Shown here in pieces: positions 52,012 through 63,904 of a stretch of DNA of 64,000 bases. Origin of the DNA: Oculina patagonica. Taxonomy: Eukaryota. The translations under genes were made by a program, and so were the position numbers. Position 1 is the first letter of the stretch, and each line of letters opens with the position of its first letter. The notes below the pieces were generated by a model. That model had not been told where the DNA came from. It worked only from the letters and a program-made list of their open reading frames with translations, and ran no database searches. The stretch covers positions 29,760,001 through 29,824,000 of the forward strand of contig NC_135769.1 of assembly GCF_052425735.1 (NCBI RefSeq), read 5' to 3'.

Positions 52012-53850
52012 GCGTCAAGCAATCAAATTCATTTCCGGTTGTCACTTGCGAAGCCGGACCAAGATATATTAAGTGATAATACACAATACATCTTGCAACA
52101 GTATCAACAAAATGCAAGTAATCAACGTTTTCACGGAACATATATCTTGTCCTTTTACGGCGTAAATTTCGAGAGTTTAAAGCGTATTTTACAAATAGAC
52201 TTGAGCAAAAACAAACTAAACTAGCAAAACATGTGCATGGCAAAGAAGTGTGAAACAAACAGGAAACCACGCAGCGCAGACTATAAATGCAATGACCTCT
52301 AGACATTTCCTTGGCCACAATCTTACGGCTCTTAATTTAATATATAATGCCTCCAGATAAAACAGATCCCCATTAGAAAGAAGTGAGAAGCAAATTACGT
52401 CGAAAAACCTTCTCAGGAAACTAATTTGCTTTGCTTTTCACCACTTCGGCTTTAGATTTCAAGTGTAGTGTCAGGTGACGTTCTTGCTAAACAAAGACCG
52501 AATGTTCGGGCAACATCTGTCGAAGATACTGTGTAGTGGGTAGTCGGGGGGTAGTGTACAATCGGGTGGAGGGTTGTTGGCGCCAGAGCACTTTTCAGAT
52601 ATGTCAAATGATGTGTCAAAAGGAGAATATTAAGTGAAGTTATCACGCAAACAGAAAAATTGAAGTGGTATCTCATTTTGCGTTTTGGTAGGTTGTTTAA
52701 ACTTCATTCAGGCCATAATAGGAAAGCAGTATATTGAATACGCGGTAGATACAGAATAAAACCATTAAGGGAAGTGCGAATATCGTTATCTGCGAAACGG
52801 GAAACAAATTTGCTTTGTTCAGTGTACTTATGTCTTACTAATTAGGTAGCTGTATCAACAAGTTGCGCTGGAAGTTCTAAAAAGCGTATTGAGAATTAAT
52901 AATTTAATCAAGGTTATTATATGTGACTGAGGGCTTTTCATGCACAGTTCTAGTTTATTTTCACTGAGAATAATTTTAGTTGCAAGGTGAGCGAACGGTA
53001 GGGTAACATGTTTGTGCAGAGGTGTATATAGAACACTTCTTTTACATATTGGAAGCTATCATCGGTCTTTAAGCGGCAGAGCAGAAGTAGTTGTTGAATA
53101 TTGACCTTAATTTTTTCATATGCTCACTAGTGGCGCACGACGGAGTTGTGATTTTTGAACAAGTTATGTAAAATAGAATATTTATTTAAAGGACGATTTC
53201 TAGAACGTTATATGACATTTTGAAGACACAAAGTCATCAGAATGGGGCTTTGTCAGGAGCCATTACTAGTAATGCGCTCCTGGCTCTGTATATTTCAGAA
53301 GTAGGTTAGAGTAGAATGTGAAGAAAGGGCACATGGTGCGATGCTGGTATAGCACAAGCTGTTGCAAATGCTTGAGAATGAAATTTGAGAATTAATATTG
53401 TAGAATCCGGAGATGGTTTTTCTGAGCTTATATGATTGTTAGCAACGGGTGCTACTTTACTGATCTGTAACACGAGACAGCCCAACGGGCACTTTGATTT
53501 GTATTTCTATTGCTTTAGAAAGTCATACGCGCGATTGCCAACAGACGGTTAAGACGAGAATCGCGCGTATGACTTTCTAAAGCAATAGAAATACAAAAAA
53601 AGTGACACCAGGTAAGGTTTAAAGTTTCATTATAACTTTTCACCGGTAAAAAGAGATATTTTTCTCAACTTTATTTCAAATCCATACAAGCTTTTATAGT
53701 ACTCATAGTACGCTTTGGTTACCTGTGATGTAATCAGGCCCTAAGAGAGCCTGGAATCAAGGTTGATAATACGCGCTAAGTCTCCCGGGAAGGTCCGCCA
53801 TGGATATATCCCAGCACTCCTTAGGGTCGGCGAGGGAAGATGGGGTAAAG

Positions 53851-56800
53851 ATGGCTGACTTTCCGGTCTGGGTTGGTGGTTTGTCTTTAGATGTAAAAGA
53901 AAATGTACTGCATAACTTATTTTACAAATTTGGGCCTATAAAAAGTATAGTGATACTCAGAGATGACTCTGGAAGGTCAAAACAGTGTGGCTTCGTTAAT
54001 TTCTTATCGCAAGAAGTTGCGGAGCTTGCAGCGAAGAAATTGGATGGATGCGAGGTTTTGGGTCAAGCAATAAAAACGAAAGGACCTCGGGAACTGTTAT
54101 CTACAGGTAGAAGTACAACCTTTGTGCCTGTAACGGCGGTAAATTCAGAGAAGAAGGATTACAGACCTCTAACAGACTGTCCGTTTTTTGTCGAGAATCG
54201 TCAATGTTTCCCGAAACCCGGCGAGGTATGACATAAGCTTAGGCTTTAAACGTAACGTTATATAAATACTTTTTATTTTCCGTGTTAGAAGCTTTTCTGC
54301 ATTTTGATTTTTATGTTTGTGTTATAGACAAGTGTTTGGACGTGTATTTGTGCTAACAGAAATTATTTTCTTCTTCAAACAGTGCTCTTTTCGTCATTGT
54401 CTCGCGGCTCTTCAAACTGATGTTGTGTGTGAAAAGTGGATACAGAAAAAATGTACGGATATCTCTTGCTGTAAAAGACATCCTAAACTCATCAAGCAAC
54501 AATCAGGTGCGAAAAACAAACGTAACAGTACTTGTTATAACCTGCAGGGGCAGGAATTTTTCTTAGAAGTGTAATATGACACCTTTATACGAGTTTTTTT
54601 GTACATGTAACACAACACTTGTCACACAATGGTGGGTCACGTCTTTTCTTACAGAGCTAATTTAAACTGTTTATTAAGAAGAGTAAACAATAGGAGAGCC
54701 AACAACCTCATGTTACATGTATTTCTATTTATTACAATGGCGATTTAGATAAAAATCTTTCCATTTGACCTCACGAATGTCTTTTAAAGAGCCTGCCAGG
54801 GTAAATTCCGACAAGCAACATGGCCCAGAAAGTAGCGTCAGCACATAAAATAAAATTGCGACAAATGACAAACCTTTTGGAAAAACTTAAATTCCGACAA
54901 GAACAAGTAATTTTCCTTTAATTTTACTACCGACAGCAACAAAAAGTTTGATAAAACAGCGACATGGCACATTTATAAATTTAGACAAGTGACACGGGAA
55001 CTCCCCCTGGCAGGGCCTCTTGGAACCCAGACTGCATAACGCATACAGTGTACATGTAAATTCCAAGCTGAAGATGTGCCATGGTTTTCAAAATTCTACA
55101 CCAAATTTATAATTATAGGTCATTGGCTTGTCAGATTATGAGAAGCACTGCCTTGATCAGATGCCAAAGACCATTAAGTGTGCTTGCATTTTGTACTCCT
55201 GCTGCAAAATGTACGCAAAATGTACCATGGCTTGTTACAATATAGTATGGACATACTAATGAAAAATGAATCATATGATTGGTGGAAGAGTTATATGTAT
55301 ATTTATTATTTATTAAAAGCTTACAATGTGTTACAAATAGATATTTTTAAAACTGTGACAATTTTACTATTTAAAATCTACGGTTATGCAAATTTAGGAG
55401 AGATCTGATGCTGTTATTAGCACATAAATATTGTATAAATTACCCCCTTTTGTATTTAGCAGACCATGTTTTTAAAGTAACAGCTTCCCGATGCCCATCA
55501 CACAATGCATTCAAATGTACTGGCGAATGTGGCTTTGATGACTGTAACACTCACTTTATGGAACAAGAAGCTTTACAAGAACACATCAACAGAGGGAGAG
55601 AGAAAAAGTTTTCCCTCACTTCATCTTGTTCTCAGGTGTTGTATTTTCTCATTTTCGACCTAAAATGTAAATGCACATATACATGTAGGTGTTGTGGTTT
55701 AATTTTACCCTTGGTATAATATGTTATTTAATTTCATTATCTAATATTACCATACACCACAACAAAGTCTAAGAATACCTAGTTGTACCAAGCATAAAAT
55801 TGAACCACAACATACTTGTCTCACGAGACTATAGTATATTCCAGAGATTTCCGCTTCGTTGATTCTCGCGAGACGAGTTTCTCGTGTATCGAAACTTGTT
55901 TCGAACTTGTCTTGAAAGAAACAAGATGAGAGGTGGTAACTTACTTTTGAGTGGTACTGCATGTATATAATTATATTTTTATGTGTATGGAATGAAACAT
56001 GCTGTTTTAATTTGCTTTTTTTCAGTGCAAGGCCATTTTCTTCAGTGAACGAGAGAGACAACAGCATTCTTGTCTACATACTGCAAAAGAATCTTTACCT
56101 GCTCTACATGGTGTACATTCCTCTAATTTAAATTTTCTTCAGTCGTCAAGTTTTCAAGTAAAGCGGAACAGTCCTGTTATGTTTACAAACAGCTCTCCTC
56201 AGAATCTTATTAAACCTCATCATCTGTGTAAAAATCCCAACAGCTCCTTACTGAATCATCACACACAATGTGCCAATAGAGTCTGTGATTGTTCCAGGAA
56301 TCATATAGATCATGTTGGTAAAGCTAAAGAATCTTTTTGTGTTTGTTCTTCGTGTGGAAAAACGTACGAAAACTCTGGTGATTCCTTGAGTGACTTTGAC
56401 TTATCTGTTGATTCTGCGGGTATTGGAGGACATAAATGCCCTAATTCACCTTCTGTGAGAGGACTCATTAGTGATGCAGATGGTATGTACATGTCATGTG
56501 TTATTTTGTCAATAATAGTTACTGATAAGAACTTTCAATCTTTCTGATTGGTCGATAAGCAGGTTTATATGAAGATTAAATGGTTCAACTAGAATTCCAC
56601 ATTCAGTAACTAAATAAGTCTGGGAACATTATTAAAATCAAGGTCTTTTATTGATATTATAGTGGAGCAGGGAAAGCGCAGTAGTGAGAGCGCTCGCTTC
56701 CCACCAATGTGGCCCTTGTTCGATTCCCAGACCCAGCATGTGTCACATATGGGTTGAGTTTGTTGTTGGTTGGTTCTTGCTCCAAGGGTTTTTCTCCAGG

Positions 56801-59800
56801 TTCTCTGGTGTTCCTCCCTCTGTGGACCTTTGTAAAACAAATTTGACTGATTTATTTATTAAGCCCAATATTTTCTGAGTACTGGACTATTGTTTAGGTT
56901 CAACACCAGTTTTTCATGTACCTCTTGTGTGTGCTAAAACACTCTCGTGTTTGATATAAATTACTACACTCTGTACCTCAATGAAGACCTACATTGTACC
57001 AGTTACTTGTACATGAAGGGCTAATTATTTTTCTCCCAATGTGGCCTTTTCGCTGGGTAAATCAGGTAATTGTGTACATGTATGTATTACCTTTTCAGCA
57101 CTGACTAATTTTTGCAAAAGCTTATTGACCAGATTTTTAAAGCTGTTATTACTATGTGTTCTTCTACACAGCATTGGCATTCAAGAATTCTTTGACTGGA
57201 TCTCCGAGCCAAGGGTCAACAGCTCCTGAACCAGAACCAATAGGTGTATTCTGGGATATAGAAAATTGTCCTGTACCACGTGGCAAGTCTGCGTCAGCTG
57301 TTGTTCAAAAGATAAGGAAGGAGTTTTTCAGTGGAAAAAGAGAGGTCGAGTTCATGTGTGTTTGTGATATCAGCAAGGAAAAGAAAGAAGTAATTGAAGA
57401 ACTTAACAAAGCTCAGGTGAGATTTTTTGTAGTTTATCAGGGCTCGATAAAAACTTGAATTACAGCTTGCCTATGGGGCAAATGACTCTCAAATTTTGCT
57501 TGCCCAGACACTATACCCCCTTGCCCAGGTTCTCAAACTTATTAATAATTCATGATTATGGTTTGCCAGGGCCTTTGCCCATTGGACAAGAGAGTATGAA
57601 AAGTCACTTGTCTAGCAGGAAAATCTACTTGTCCCGGACGACCAAACAGGGTTTTGTCAAGCCCTGTTTATGCATTAATAATTGGAAAATTATGAAACAC
57701 CTTCAGTTGGTAAAGAAGGGTCAGAAACTTAATTAATGAGAGCATGTACCATCTGAGGAAGTAACATTTTACGTGAGTTTGGTGTGTTGACAAAATTAGT
57801 GAATCCTTCTAATGGAGTAAATGCCAAAAATAATGGAAATTTACTTTACCCTGTACCTTGTTGTAGGTAACTGTAGTTCACATCAATGCCACTTCAAAAA
57901 ATGCCGCCGATGACAAATTACGTCAAAGCCTGCGGCGATTTGCACAGTCTTACCCTCCTCCAGCTACAGTCATCTTGGTGTCTGGGGACATCAACTTTGC
58001 AGCAGAGCTGTCTGATTTACGTCATCGACACAACCTAGAAGTGATCTGTCTTCATAACGCCCAGGCTCAGGCTGCCTTACTGGCTTGTGCTCACGAGGCG
58101 AGGAGATTTGATCATTTTACTGCTGACATTCCTGTTGTCTTCCCTCCAAAGGTAAGTTTGTCTTTTCACTAATCGCAAAGTTAATATTTAGCACTTGAAT
58201 TTGTTGGAATAGCATTCAAAACCAATATTCTGGGGGAAGGCAGTGACTGTCCAACATGTTAACTGCTTAAAATGCTAACCGCTAACCCCTCTTTCTATCC
58301 CCCTCCCACAAATGCCAATTGTAGACAAGCTCCCATAAGGAGGTTAAGAGAGGACTGTTGACAACACTTACTCCTCTAGTTAATTATGTTACAAGATTAT
58401 TGCATTCAACCGTAGGGAAGAAATGATGGTAAATGTCACAGGTTTGACAGACTTCTTTTTTAGGTAGCTTGTGTCACTGATTGCTTCATACATGTATCTT
58501 TTCAATCTTAATATCAGTTACAAAATGTTCATTTTATTCCAGGCACCTGAGGAGAGTGACTTGTCATCAGAGCTTCTTGTCCTCAATCTTCCAATGGGTA
58601 AAGATGTTACACAGGTCAGGAACAGACTGAAGAAACTCTCTGACAACTGTGGAGGAAAGGTTGTGAGCATCTCAGGACGCACCTCTGTTCTAAGATTTCC
58701 AAATCCTGCTAGTGCTGCAAGGTAAATTTGGATTGTTAATCCTCAACCAACAGTTTATGTTTTTGCTGCCGTCAATCATCTTAGTGGACCTCTCAGGAAA
58801 CAGAAGCTCACTTCAACCGGGTCAGAAGGTCACATCTGTCAGTTGTGTGATTGGAGGATTTCGATCCATTTTGTTTGTTTCTAATGTGTTTTTCATAGTT
58901 CCTTGGCTATCGCCATAATTATGATTGACGGCAGCAAAAAAAAAAAAAACAATTATCATTAGTTGGATTTTGAATTTCAGAGTTCACATATCACTGAAAA
59001 CAACCTCGGTCCCAGGGTCTCTATCTCCCCGCCCCCCAGCCTGAGCGAAAGATGAGAGACCCTGTTTTATTAAACTGAAAATGTGCCTCCTAGACATTTA
59101 AGAACAGTAAACGCGAGGGTACTCTTTAATCGTAAGTAAATTTCTCGTCCTTATCCTTTGTCGCATTCCAAGCGTTATCATTCCACACGGCAGCGTTCTA
59201 TGAACAAATGGCTACTGATAGTATTTCCAATGCGGTACAGGTTCATTATAACATCCTTGGCCGCAGCCAGCGAGCAATTCCCTATCACCCTTCTTGAAGC
59301 TAAGATATTTACAATGTGTAATGCCCGTAACTGTGACCTCTTCAGCGAAAACGTGTCTTATGCTAGCAGTTTTGAAAGGTACTGTTCGTATAATAAAACA
59401 GTTCAACAGATGAAATGGGATGGGTTGCCGTTTTTACAACTAGAAATACCGTAAACACCCGCGTATAAGCCGCTACCTCGACTTTGTAAACTAAAATTTG
59501 GAAAAAAAGTTTTTTAAAGTAAATCAAAGAAAATCCAAAGTTGAGTCTTTAGGAAGTCTTCTTCATCGAACGTATACTCAATGAACACTGAAACAGAAAA
59601 TACTTCAGTCTTACCCAGCAATTTGAGCTCTTAAATATAATGAAAACCAACTTTCGACATATTATGGGTGATCTTTTTCTAGCATTTGTTGCCATTGGTG
59701 ATCTTTTTCTAGGCATTTGTTGCCAATCTTAATAGGTGTCAATCTTAACAGTCTGTTCCTGACTTGGTTTCGTCCTGCTATAGGACGATGAATATATTTT

Positions 59801-62800
59801 CTCCACCGTTTGCAAGATATTTATACCGTCCAACGTTGCCGTACTGCAATGTAAAATCTACATGTACAGTAGTGTTTATTTTGGTGGCAACACTTTCCGC
59901 TTTGCTGTGGGCTTAGTATTGACAAAATACATTTCTAAGTCGCCCCTCCCTCTAACAATCTTTTTGTCACCACCCAGATTCTGGGGGGCACGTGACCAGA
60001 CCCAACCAGGGTCTCTCTTCTCTCGCTCTGGGGGGCAGGGAGAGAGAGACCCTGGGAACGAGGTTGCACTGAAAAGTGCAACAAGCTTCTATTGTTTGAA
60101 TGCAGGCTCTAAAATGACAGTCATGTATAAATTATGTACTTTTTTAACACTGGGTACATGTATGTACAACTTTTCCTCTCAGGGCAAGGAGAAGGATGGA
60201 CAAGGAAGATGTATTTGGTTCCACAATCCAGGTTGTGTATTCAACAACCAGTCAAGGAAATGCTTGTAGTCCCCAAAAGAGCAAGAAAACACAGCAGGTG
60301 GAAGCCGCTGGTAATTTGGTGAGCAAAGGTAGAGACCCTTCGCCAAAACCCCCACACAACCCATTGCAAAAGGAAAAGGCAGGTTCTAATTGTGCACTGT
60401 TAGACAATTTCGTTATCGAGAATGGCTCATCATCCAGGAAAAGTGGGAAACAGGAGATTAAAGCCAGTACGTCACCTACAGATGACAGTCCTGACTCAGG
60501 GGATAGTACAGAAGAAAATGACGGTAAGCCAGGAGCCTCTCTACCAGAGTTCTAATGGCCCTCAGTTCATCAGCCATCAGACAATGTTCAGTAATGGATC
60601 CTATGCCGGCATCTGGCCACACCCTATCTACCAGAACTTCATGAACTTACCAACTCAGGGCACAGGCTTTCCAGGAATCACCCCTCTTGCCCCTCCACTT
60701 ATGGGAGGACCCCATCTTGCTGCTTCGTGGCTAGCCAGCTTGCATAACTTTACTGTTTTGGACCAGCAGCGAGGAGGAATAGATTTGCTTGTAACTAATT
60801 TGGATGAGAGTGTGAGCAAGAAAGAGTTGAAGAAGAAACTTGCATCTGTGTTTAGGGAACATTGTAAGGTGAGAGCCTATCAGTTGACTGTTCATTTGCG
60901 CATGGCAATATCATTTGTTTTACAGTATGTTGTGGTTCAATTTTACCCTTGATACCGGGGGGATTTGATGTTTTCCTTTCTTGGTAAAATATGATAATTT
61001 CAGTGAATACAAAACAAAACAAAATACCAGATTGTACCAAGGGTAGAATTGAACACAACATGTACATGTACTTTTGTAAACTTTGTTTTTTCTTGTATGA
61101 TCTCTTAATGTGTGGACTTGTACCACTTTCCTTGCGGGGGGGGGGGGTAACTGTCTTATTTTCAGTGTTTCTTTTTTTTGTCAAAAAATAGCCTATAAAC
61201 AGTAAGGAGTCATGGTTCTGCAACCCTTAACAAACATACATGAAGAACTTAGACTTATTTTAGGCATATTGATCTGGTCATGTGAGCTACTGAAGAGAAT
61301 TTACATTTTGATATTTGCAATGAGTGTTCTTCCTCCTCTCTTTCCCTCACAGGATTTTGATTGTAAAAGAATAACATGTGCATGACTTGTAGATTGAAAC
61401 ATTTTCTTTAAGGTTTATATTAAAATCATAGAAACAGGAGGGAAAATGTAAAAGAATGCAAAATGCTGTGGATCATAAGAACAAATTAAAATCAAATGTT
61501 TCCATTTTGTAGTATTTTGCATTCTCCCAAACTTCCACTTCTGTTTTTGGGACACAAAATGCTGTTCTGTTTTTTGACTGCAACATCTTCTGATTATTAC
61601 AGTGCTTTATATAATGCAAGGGTTGTGTAGATTTTGTGACAACTGATAAAATAATTTCTGTGTTGGGGTTGTTGTCTTGCAGGTTTTGTCTGTCATTCTT
61701 CACAGTGGGGAAGGCATTCCTTTGAGAGCTTTTGTTAAAGTGCCAAAACTATCTGATGCACAACTGGCAATCTGCAAAGTTCACCAGAAGAAAATTTTCA
61801 ATACTCATGTCACTGTGAACATTGCTACAGACAAAGAGAAGGAACTCTGCTTTCTACGTTGTGAAGTGACCTCCATTCTCAAAGAGGCTCCCCTGCACGT
61901 TTTGCCACTGAACAAATTCCTCAGCGACTACTATGAGAAATGTTCTCGTGCATTTGATATGAGCTCTATTGGACTTATCCACGATCTAGTCGTGATAACT
62001 GGGAAACCTGGTAATCAGACAATAAGTCTTGTAACACGAGCCATCGGTAGTGTAAAGGTGTCCGTAGAACCCGAGCAGTTTGCTAAAGATGTTCACGCAC
62101 TTCTCAAATCTTGCGAAGGTTCTTTGCCCTTGGTTAGTTTTGCCGCTTCCTACTGGCTTCAGTTTGACAAGAAGATAGAGCCAAATGAACGAGGAGCCCC
62201 CCTTGCTGATGTTCTAAGTTGTGTTCCAAATGTCAAAATAACAGACTCCTTGATGGTGTCTTGGGCTAAACAAGCTGTCAAAAATGGTATGTTATCATGA
62301 AACAAAACTGTCCACTGCTCTTTAAGTAAATTTTGGGAACAGCGATTGAGTGTTAAAGTTGCATAGATTGCTACAGATTTCTTTCACAATTTTTTCTGAA
62401 GTGAAATCACATGAGGTGAAGATACATTCTTGGCCTAAGTGTCTGATTTGGACTAGTTTTCAAAAACAATAAGCTCTTTTGATTCTACTGAGTTATTATA
62501 ATGATATTTTACATGTATGTATTTGTCATAATGTTAATGTTTGAAAGGAATTACCATGCAAATTTGTTATGTATGTACCGGCTATTTGTATAAAGTACAT
62601 TATTGACTCTGAAATTTTTGTATGCCTAAAATATTAATATTTTTAGATGCTAGGGTCCCAGATAAGCCTGAGAATTTTTCAGGTGCGAAAATCCTTCTAA
62701 AAATATATAGAGGTTTACTAAAGAGGCATTGAACAAAAACAAGCCCAGACTTAATCGAAATTTTATTGTACTCTCTTGTGGTACCATAACTATTAAAAGC

Positions 62801-63904
62801 ATCAAATAATAGATGACTGTCAATCAGGATAGTTGAGGTACATGTAAGAAGATTTTTTTTTTTTTTCGTCAACAGGAGGGAATGTTGGCAAGCTTCTTGA
62901 ACTAAGCAAAGATTTACACGAGTTGCTGGTGATGCAGGAGGAATTCAAACTTCCTCTCAGTTCAGTGATCTCTGACTACCAGTTGTGGTTTGGGAAGAAG
63001 ACTCCATTTGATCCTGTTGTCTATGGATTCACTTCTGTTGTGACGCTTCTAGAAGCTTTACCAGCTGTGGCTGAGGTAAGTAGATGGTGGCCAGAGTTTC
63101 CTGAGCTGCAGTTGTCTCATGGGTAGTATACTACGCGTGTAGACTGTGGATTGAGTAGTATGGGCTTCAGCCCTGGCTCCTGGCTGGGCTGCCTCTCCTC
63201 CCAGGAGAGGTGTATTATGATTGGAAACCAGCGAACTAACGTTGTAGGGTAGCTGTTGCAGTGGAGGGAGAGAGGGCTGGGAATGGGGGAGTAGAAATAC
63301 TCCTAGTCTCTTGCAAATGAAACTGGAGGGATAGTGTAATTGTTGGCATGATGGGGGACTACTCACTAGCCTATAACACCCTGCACCTCTACCCAGGGAC
63401 ATTTTGCACTCTCCCCAGTTCTCGCCCACATAAAGGAACCAAGATGGTGGCCTGTCAAACTCAACCATCAATCTCTATGACTTAATAGAAAACAAGGGGA
63501 CTGTTAACAGTCTAAATTTTACCTGAATGTAGCATTAATTATTTTTTACAACAAATGTACATATAGAAATACACATGTGTATTAATGTACATGTGGAATT
63601 TGTTTTGGAAAATGGACCTATTGGTTGTGTGTTTTGTAAGTTTATTTTAATATAATTTTTTTAAATTAAAATGCAGGTAGCACTTCAAGGCTCCGAAAGA
63701 TGGCTCATCCTTTCACAGCCCTTGAAAATCAAAGCCTTTGAGAAAAACCTCAAAATGCTACTTGAAAGTCAACCTGATGGAGTGATTGCATTGGGAAACT
63801 TCGTGTCAGCTTACATGAGGTTTTTTGGTCAGAAGTGCAAGATTGCAACGTTTGGCTTTTCCAAGCTGACAGATTTGATTGAAGCTGTTCCTACTGTTGC
63901 CAAG
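53851..63904 (+). CDS. MARF1: MARF1/Limkain-b1-like NYN ribonuclease with RRMs and LOTUS domains plus an extra N-terminal RRM and zinc fingers; 3'-incomplete
   Basis: Exons 53851-54225 (RRM; alternative in-frame ATG at 53800), 54383-54506 (CCCH), 55460-55635, 56026-56482 (C2H2), 57172-57416 ([12 protein letters not shown]), 57867-58151 ([15 protein letters not shown]...SGDINF), 58543-58721 ([13 protein letters not shown]), 60183-60868 (frame change at about 60524-60674), 61683-62286, 62876-63075 and 63677-63904 (LOTUS: Y...FG...YGF/FGF..L..L/I.A.P). Confidence 0.88.
56663..56845 (+). mobile_element. tRNA-derived SINE
   Basis: gcgcagtagtgagagcgctcgcttcccaccaatgtggcccttgttcgattccc head followed by a tgggttgagtttgttgttggtt...gggtttttctcc body. 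Confidence 0.75.
57438..57666. mobile_element. hAT-like MITE with a 5-bp TSD
   Basis: tttat|cagggctcgataaaa...ttttgtcaagccctg|tttat. Confidence 0.8.

Follow-up and report, generated by a model that had tools for sequence, protein, structure and literature searches.

The DNA analysed here (hereafter the window) is a stretch of 64,000 nucleotides from the coral Oculina patagonica (contig NC_135769.1 of assembly GCF_052425735.1, positions 29,760,001 to 29,824,000), and all positions below are counted from its first letter. It is eukaryotic DNA with short introns and a base composition of approximately 39% G+C. At 53851-58151, on the plus strand, six GT-AG exons with compatible phases make up the 5' half of a MARF1 gene, in which the NYN nuclease domain is preceded by an N-terminal module, called here the head, that contains an RNA recognition motif (RRM) and four zinc fingers. 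Once spliced, the exons encode, in order, the RRM, a pair of CCCH fingers, two C2H2-like fingers, a Cys/His-rich linker and the NYN domain, followed by a MARF1-specific RRM, a second RRM and LOTUS repeats. An initial annotation of the window had joined these exons by their phases, and both the joins and the peptides it quoted are present, with 53851 and 58151 falling exactly on exon bounds. The six exons are all flanked by AG...GT, have the phases 0/0, 0/1, 1/0, 0/1, 1/0 and 0/0, and are separated by introns of 157-953 nt. Eleven exons were delimited in the window, and the gene extends beyond the window end, since its orthologues are approximately 650-750 residues longer according to tblastn.

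53851..54225, plus strand: exon 1; ATG, RRM (VWVGGLS...CGFVNF), linker, and Cys 1 and 2 of CCCH finger 1; phase 0 at its end (...KPGE)
54383..54506, plus strand: exon 2; remainder of CCCH finger 1 (C-x3-H) and CCCH finger 2 (C-x7-C-x4-C-x3-H)
55460..55635, plus strand: exon 3; finger 3 (C2H2-like, final His missing; [23 protein letters not shown]...QEH), plus the opening Cys of finger 4
56026..56482, plus strand: exon 4; remainder of finger 4 (C-x2-C-x12-H-x3-H), a linker of low complexity, and a Cys/His and acidic motif specific to hexacorals
57172..57416, plus strand: exon 5; N-terminal half of NYN, holding one catalytic Asp in WDIEN and one in CVCD
57867..58151, plus strand: exon 6; C-terminal half of NYN, holding one catalytic Asp in AADD and one in SGD
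58543..58721, plus strand: exon 7; MARF1-specific RRM 1 (Pfam RRM_MARF1)
60183..60868, plus strand: exon 8; linker and beginning of RRM 2; holds a one-base frame break at approximately 60546-60548
61683..62286, plus strand: exon 9; remainder of RRM 2 and MARF1 LOTUS region (Pfam MARF1_LOTUS, E = 4.1e-11)
62876..63075, plus strand: exon 10; OST-HTH/LOTUS repeat (Pfam OST-HTH, E = 1.7e-8), with AG/GT bounds
63677..63904, plus strand: exon 11; OST-HTH/LOTUS repeat (Pfam OST-HTH, E = 2.1e-12)

The identity of the gene was established from its nuclease and from the domains that follow it. Pfam families were searched with single exons at E values up to 1 and also with the whole deposited Oculina protein (P0202, described below). 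The NYN family matched exon 5 (E = 3.4e-6) and exon 6 (E = 3.6e-8), and the only sequence matches of the two exons in the PDB were the MARF1 NYN structures 6FDL (E = 1.5e-27 and 1e-31, respectively) and 5YAA (E = 3.4e-26 and 7.5e-31). In the alignment to these structures, the acidic residues are intact, as had been noticed from the sequence for WDIEN, AADD and SGD: the Asp of WDIEN, CVCD, AADD and SGD align with mouse D178, D215, D246 and D272 (counted along the 5YAA chain, mouse residues 158-320), each of which is required for RNA cleavage by mouse MARF1 (PMC6217404). Directly after NYN, the family RRM_MARF1 (PF11608) was found with an E value of 8.2e-12 on exon 7 and 2.1e-19 on P0202. MARF1_LOTUS and OST-HTH repeats are present in exons 9-11, which in the assembly are parted from the upstream open reading frame (ORF) by the frame break in exon 8. 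Judging from these alignments, the gene is a MARF1 orthologue with all four catalytic aspartates.

The head, the nuclease and the downstream LOTUS exons belong to one transcription unit. The sole Met of exon 5 lies after the first catalytic Asp, with no in-frame ATG before it, so that an upstream coding exon is required. Searches by tblastn with the Desmophyllum, Stylophora and Nematostella proteins were collinear with the window, and their high-scoring segment pairs ended at the same exon bounds. The eight-exon coding sequence (CDS; 53851...60555) translates, residue for residue, to a deposited entry named "hypothetical protein ACROYT_G038876 [Oculina patagonica]" (P0202; 737 aa and a stop). 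An exact look-up of this protein in the contig index returned no record. A Logan contig from a related coral (L001, run SRR22097855; 8744 nt) holds an uninterrupted ORF of 1844 aa spanning all domains from the RRM to the LOTUS repeats, with 75-92% identity to the window in the well-conserved exons and 48-55% in the variable stretches. Because this contig is intron-free, we read it as a spliced transcript and take it as transcript-type evidence for one gene. All the Nematostella isoforms tested have the head as well, X2, X3 and X4 (P0160, P0158 and P0157) according to a hidden Markov model (HMM) of the module and X1 (P0019) according to Pfam. The proposal that an RRM, a tandem CCCH pair and a C2H2-like module lead into NYN within a single MARF1 gene is thus borne out by the exon phases, by the deposited protein and by the L001 contig.

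Each part of the head was characterized. Exon 1 matched Pfam RRM_1 with an E value of 1e-16 (scores for the head RRM span 1e-16 to 2e-18) and retains the RNP-type motifs VWVGGL and CGFVNF. Exon 2 matched zf-CCCH_3 (PF15663; E = 4.5e-8) with 33.7 bits, above the gathering cut-off of 31 bits, and on whole proteins the same family scored 32.5 bits on P0202 and 39 bits on the sponge orthologue. ZC3H11A carries three CCCH fingers, and the match spans only model positions 6-62 of 110; we read it as two of these three fingers. The CCCH ligands are spaced C-x8-C-x6-C-x3-H in finger 1 (split by intron 1), then C-x9, and C-x7-C-x4-C-x3-H in finger 2, and those of both fingers are invariant in a 12-sequence alignment of corals, anemone, octocorals, hydrozoans and sponge. 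A profile of the pair aligned to consecutive fingers of Yth1 (E = 1.3e-6) and CPSF30 (E = 3.7e-5).

Next come fingers 3 and 4. Finger 3, initially described as a degenerate C2H2, does lack the last His, but it is a conserved finger with the pattern C-x4-C-x3-F-x5-L-x2-H and with other conserved Cys residues ahead of it. In the same alignment, C186, C190, C195, F199 and H208 do not vary in any sequence, the sponge included; C190 is also the invariant Cys upstream of the finger, where C178 is found in all cnidarians and not in the sponge. Finger 4, split by intron 3 and described as a perfect C2H2, has the exact ligand pattern C-x2-C-x12-H-x3-H in Oculina, and its last ligand is H or C among cnidarians. 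Conservation of its ligands in cnidarians is 90% or higher, and the sponge has no such finger. For the family zf-C2H2, the Pfam match is weak and below the cut-off (E = 0.053). A profile of fingers 3-4 aligned to the tandem C2H2 fingers of Zif268/EGR1 with E values of 0.002-0.005. The further Cys/His-rich stretch pointed out in the initial annotation is present in the distal part of exon 4, where Cys, His and acidic residues form a motif ([21 protein letters not shown]...[13 protein letters not shown], also written CxCSSCG...SGDSLSDFD...[13 protein letters not shown]). It could be aligned only in scleractinians and Nematostella, which limits its conservation to hexacorals, and exon 4 matched no Pfam family. 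AlphaFold models built on the 12-sequence alignment contained a confident RRM (pLDDT 85-94), a disordered linker and a compact CCCH pair (pLDDT 74-89), with flexible segments between the parts. Fingers 3-4 were modelled as two beta-beta-alpha units (pLDDT 58-77), finger 3 as a beta-hairpin and a helix with a pLDDT of approximately 75.

Exon 1, used as the query of an exhaustive HMMER search, retrieved the Nematostella protein XP_048575860.1 (P0019, 1943 aa), in which Pfam places RRM_1 at 7-73, zf-CCCH_3 at 105-160 and NYN at 341-474, followed by RRM_MARF1 and LOTUS repeats. The best 150 matches of this search were for the most part multi-RRM proteins, together with P0019 and single-exon fragments. 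Among the latter are genomic exon-1 fragments that are only 43-50% identical to any named species; in every one of them similarity breaks off just past G-E/K/Q|V, which points to a conserved and old intron within CCCH finger 1. The same collinear architecture was observed in predicted MARF1-like proteins of Stylophora, Desmophyllum, Nematostella, Dendronephthya, Xenia, Hydra, Hydractinia, Clytia and the sponge Ephydatia (Em0020g811a). In total, at least 10 other cnidarian or sponge species carry it in NCBI, UniProt or EukProt, as long models that are mostly named MARF1-like by their source and have precomputed Pfam domains. The deposited Oculina entry is identical to the protein of the window and the Desmophyllum protein 87% identical, whereas the hydrozoan and octocoral proteins differ from those of hexacorals in having no Cys/His and acidic motif, and the Ephydatia protein differs from the coral protein in having no finger 4. 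In Hydra vulgaris, we observed three MARF1-like paralogues (P0154, P0200 and P0201) on two contigs; P0201 has kept the RRM and the CCCH pair and is missing fingers 3-4, and P0154 has a gap within the RRM, possibly a model error.

No trace of the head was detected in the deuterostome MARF1 proteins examined. PF15663 was not listed for hemichordate (Ptychodera, Glandiceps, Saccoglossus), amphioxus or vertebrate MARF1 among the matches listed, and the head-module HMM, run against approximately 100 deuterostome MARF1 proteins, gave no N-terminal match and only weak cross-matches to internal RRMs. Pfam found nothing in the pre-NYN regions of amphioxus and Ptychodera, and hhalign returned a probability of 0.2% between the head and an alignment of vertebrate pre-NYN regions. 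These searches agree with the expectation, stated at the outset, that vertebrate MARF1 has no such module. Word searches with Nematostella residues 1-340 and Desmophyllum residues 1-262 returned only cnidarians and Ephydatia and missed even known carriers, while vertebrates dominate the 120 matches listed by an alignment search. The safe statement, for the predicted proteins, is that Cnidaria and one sponge have the head and that the MARF1 of the hemichordates, amphioxus and vertebrates examined lacks it. The MARF1 of Branchiostoma (P0212/P0214) has one canonical N-terminal C2H2 finger at residues 31-64 (C-x4-C-x12-H-x4-H), which aligns to coral finger 3 at E = 1.4, and vertebrate MARF1 has Cys/His patches ahead of NYN, at residues approximately 170-200 (e.g., C-x7-C-x4-CC-x3-H). 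These may be remnants of the head in deuterostomes, but we set the idea aside, the profile comparison being not significant and giving no evidence of homology.

Other features of the locus concern its 5' end and introns. Another in-frame ATG lies at 53800, in a strong Kozak context (gccATGG), and a start there would lengthen the protein by 17 residues (53800-53850). Because these 17 codons are not conserved at the protein level in two close relatives (P0001 and P0002), translation more likely begins at 53851. A perfect 39-nt inverted repeat (53498-53536 and 53559-53597, 22 nt apart) lies approximately 250 nt upstream of the start codon. In intron 7, a 49-nt inverted repeat with 86% complementarity flanks approximately 1 kb (59001-60066), and this stretch looks like the insertion of a small DNA transposon or a miniature inverted-repeat transposable element (MITE). 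No tRNA-like element was found in intron 4 by ARAGORN.

Vertebrate MARF1 (Limkain b1) is composed of NYN, two RRMs and LOTUS repeats, an order that is the same downstream of the head in coral, with the four catalytic Asp in common. In contrast, neither an RRM nor a CCCH pair could be detected in the pre-NYN region of vertebrate, amphioxus and hemichordate MARF1 (330-490 residues), and profile comparison showed no similarity between this region and the head. ZC3H11A and CPSF30/Yth1 contain a closely spaced CCCH pair like that of the head, but they have no RRM in front of it and no nuclease behind. RNases with added RNA-binding domains are well known. Regnase-1/ZC3H12A and KHNYN/N4BP1 likewise join an RNA-binding unit to an NYN-type endonuclease (PMC5499597 and PMC6615859 as background), and the CCCH and NYN pairing of the window had been likened to Regnase-type RNases. 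This likeness holds in composition and goes no further: Pfam returned no match to the Regnase nuclease family (PF11977) at E values up to 1, the single CCCH finger of Regnase lies after the nuclease whereas the coral fingers precede theirs, and the sole relatives by sequence among solved structures are MARF1. KHNYN has KH domains, and the coral NYN is of the MARF1 branch. Since its nuclease belongs to that branch and its fingers precede it, the coral protein is not a member of the Regnase or KHNYN families. In plants, AtC3H18 (CCCH, LOTUS and RRM) and DNE1 (NYN and OST-HTH) are independent combinations in RNA-granule proteins (PMC9335048; bioRxiv 10.1101/2021.10.01.462782; PMC2848206), but neither has all four kinds of domain in one chain and the order differs. 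The OST-HTH survey of Aravind described fusions of LK-nucleases with RRMs and Zn-knuckles, and of LOTUS with CCCH (PMC2848206).

Taken as a whole, these observations are best explained by a one-gene MARF1 of cnidarians and sponges, with a head that would add RNA contacts and that was lost toward deuterostomes, a reading to which we assign a probability of roughly 85%. The head architecture is real and probably ancient. Because the active site is conserved, coral MARF1 is predicted to be an endonuclease on single-stranded RNA and would act like mammalian MARF1, that is, as a metal-dependent enzyme whose RNA-binding domains hold the RNA that it cuts. Ahead of the active site, the RRM and the four fingers could provide additional single-strand RNA contacts, and such contacts would narrow or widen the range of cleaved transcripts. 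The domain order and the motifs are common to the sponge and the cnidarians, so early animals most likely had the head already and the deuterostome lineage most likely lost it. A more ambitious version can be put forward only tentatively, as we consider it slightly less probable than its negation: MARF1 with the head would be the ancestral animal form, which sponges and cnidarians retained and which disappeared either before Bilateria arose or within that group, and the head would serve a sequence-specific selection of RNA (germline, transposon or viral) that bilaterians passed to other factors.

The alternative that survives best, though we regard it as unlikely, accepts a single gene and assigns the head to something other than the choice of RNA targets. 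The head would then be a unit for protein docking or localisation in export or decay complexes, as ZC3H11A is in TREX, or fingers 3-4 would bind DNA. The match of the CCCH pair to the ZC3H11A family model and the best alignment of fingers 3-4, to DNA-binding tandem C2H2 fingers such as those of Zif268, are consistent with such roles, as is the fact that target binding in mammalian MARF1 is performed by the LOTUS repeats alone (PMC6217404). On the other hand, the strong RRM score with its RNP-type motifs, the RNA-binding fingers of CPSF30 and Yth1 as the nearest solved CCCH tandems, and the position of all parts, on flexible linkers, directly ahead of the RNase argue for RNA contacts.

A still less probable alternative is that the Oculina copy is truncated or decaying. 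Relative to Desmophyllum and Stylophora MARF1, exon 8 contains one extra base at approximately 60546-60548 (window 60541-60555), located from the frame switch of coral orthologues in tblastn and from a three-frame reading against these two species. If this break were real, the product would stop after the first MARF1 RRM, without RRM 2 and the LOTUS repeats; indeed, the deposited model ends there, at the TAA of 60553-60555, after its 737 aa, and the break sits outside any homopolymer run. However, the 452 codons downstream of the break, distributed over four exons, are open, have intact splice sites and are 93.3% identical, without gaps, to Desmophyllum residues 740-1190, compared with 86.8% identity for the part upstream. 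Downstream codons that are open, properly spliced and this similar to Desmophyllum suggest that the break is either an indel of the assembly or an allele of very recent origin. A tiny intron bridging the break at 60546 was considered as well and rejected, as there is no donor/acceptor pair of the needed length and the intron would be shorter than 30 nt.

The least probable alternative, which we consider largely refuted, is that gene predictors fused two neighbours, an RRM/zinc-finger gene made of exons 1-4 and a MARF1 gene starting at the NYN exons: such fusions do occur, the supporting models are mostly automatic and the transcript evidence is from a related coral, but the NYN exon 5 has no ATG ahead of its first catalytic Asp, its phase-1 acceptor matches the phase-1 donor of exon 4, the L001 contig holds both parts in a single ORF, and the order is identical in 11 species, as distant as a sponge, from different annotation pipelines.

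Several points nevertheless weigh against a headed, one-gene MARF1 as we describe it. The transcript-type evidence comes from a related coral, and the orthologue models are automatic predictions, some of which may have been built on each other's homology. The structure models of the head are of medium confidence (pLDDT 68-73), and a Foldseek search of the finger model against the PDB gave no match below E = 0.1, the top non-significant matches being a mixture of tandem C2H2 and CCCH proteins. The frame break could leave the protein of this allele without LOTUS repeats, which mouse MARF1 requires for cleavage (PMC6217404). Within Bilateria, the loss is shown for deuterostomes only, the matches of the word searches having come from anthozoans, Hydra and Ephydatia. 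Finally, the putative RNA binding by the head, the predicted nuclease activity and the biological role in non-bilaterians, for which germline, antiviral or anti-transposon decay had been proposed, are all things that we infer.

As for novelty, the architecture had initially been put forward as possibly undescribed. In that form the idea is not supported, given that the same joins are in the deposited Oculina annotation and the same order in the cnidarian and sponge species mentioned above. The survey of MARF1 N termini, named beforehand as the test that could overturn the idea, found the architecture already widespread in annotation as far as cnidarians are concerned. No paper describing the head on an animal MARF1 was found in the literature searched. 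With the architecture already public in annotations that include Pfam domains, the gain is incremental.

To our knowledge, work on MARF1 is limited to mammals and flies. LOTUS repeats show little sequence preference when they bind RNA, which leaves the choice of targets by MARF1 hard to explain. The distribution of the head also gives a date for a clear loss of domains in the lineage leading to deuterostomes. Moreover, Nematostella, Hydra and Hydractinia are genetically manipulable, and a natural MARF1 with an RRM and four fingers ahead of its nuclease, retained between sponge and coral, makes a tractable subject for studying how an NYN RNase is directed to its targets.

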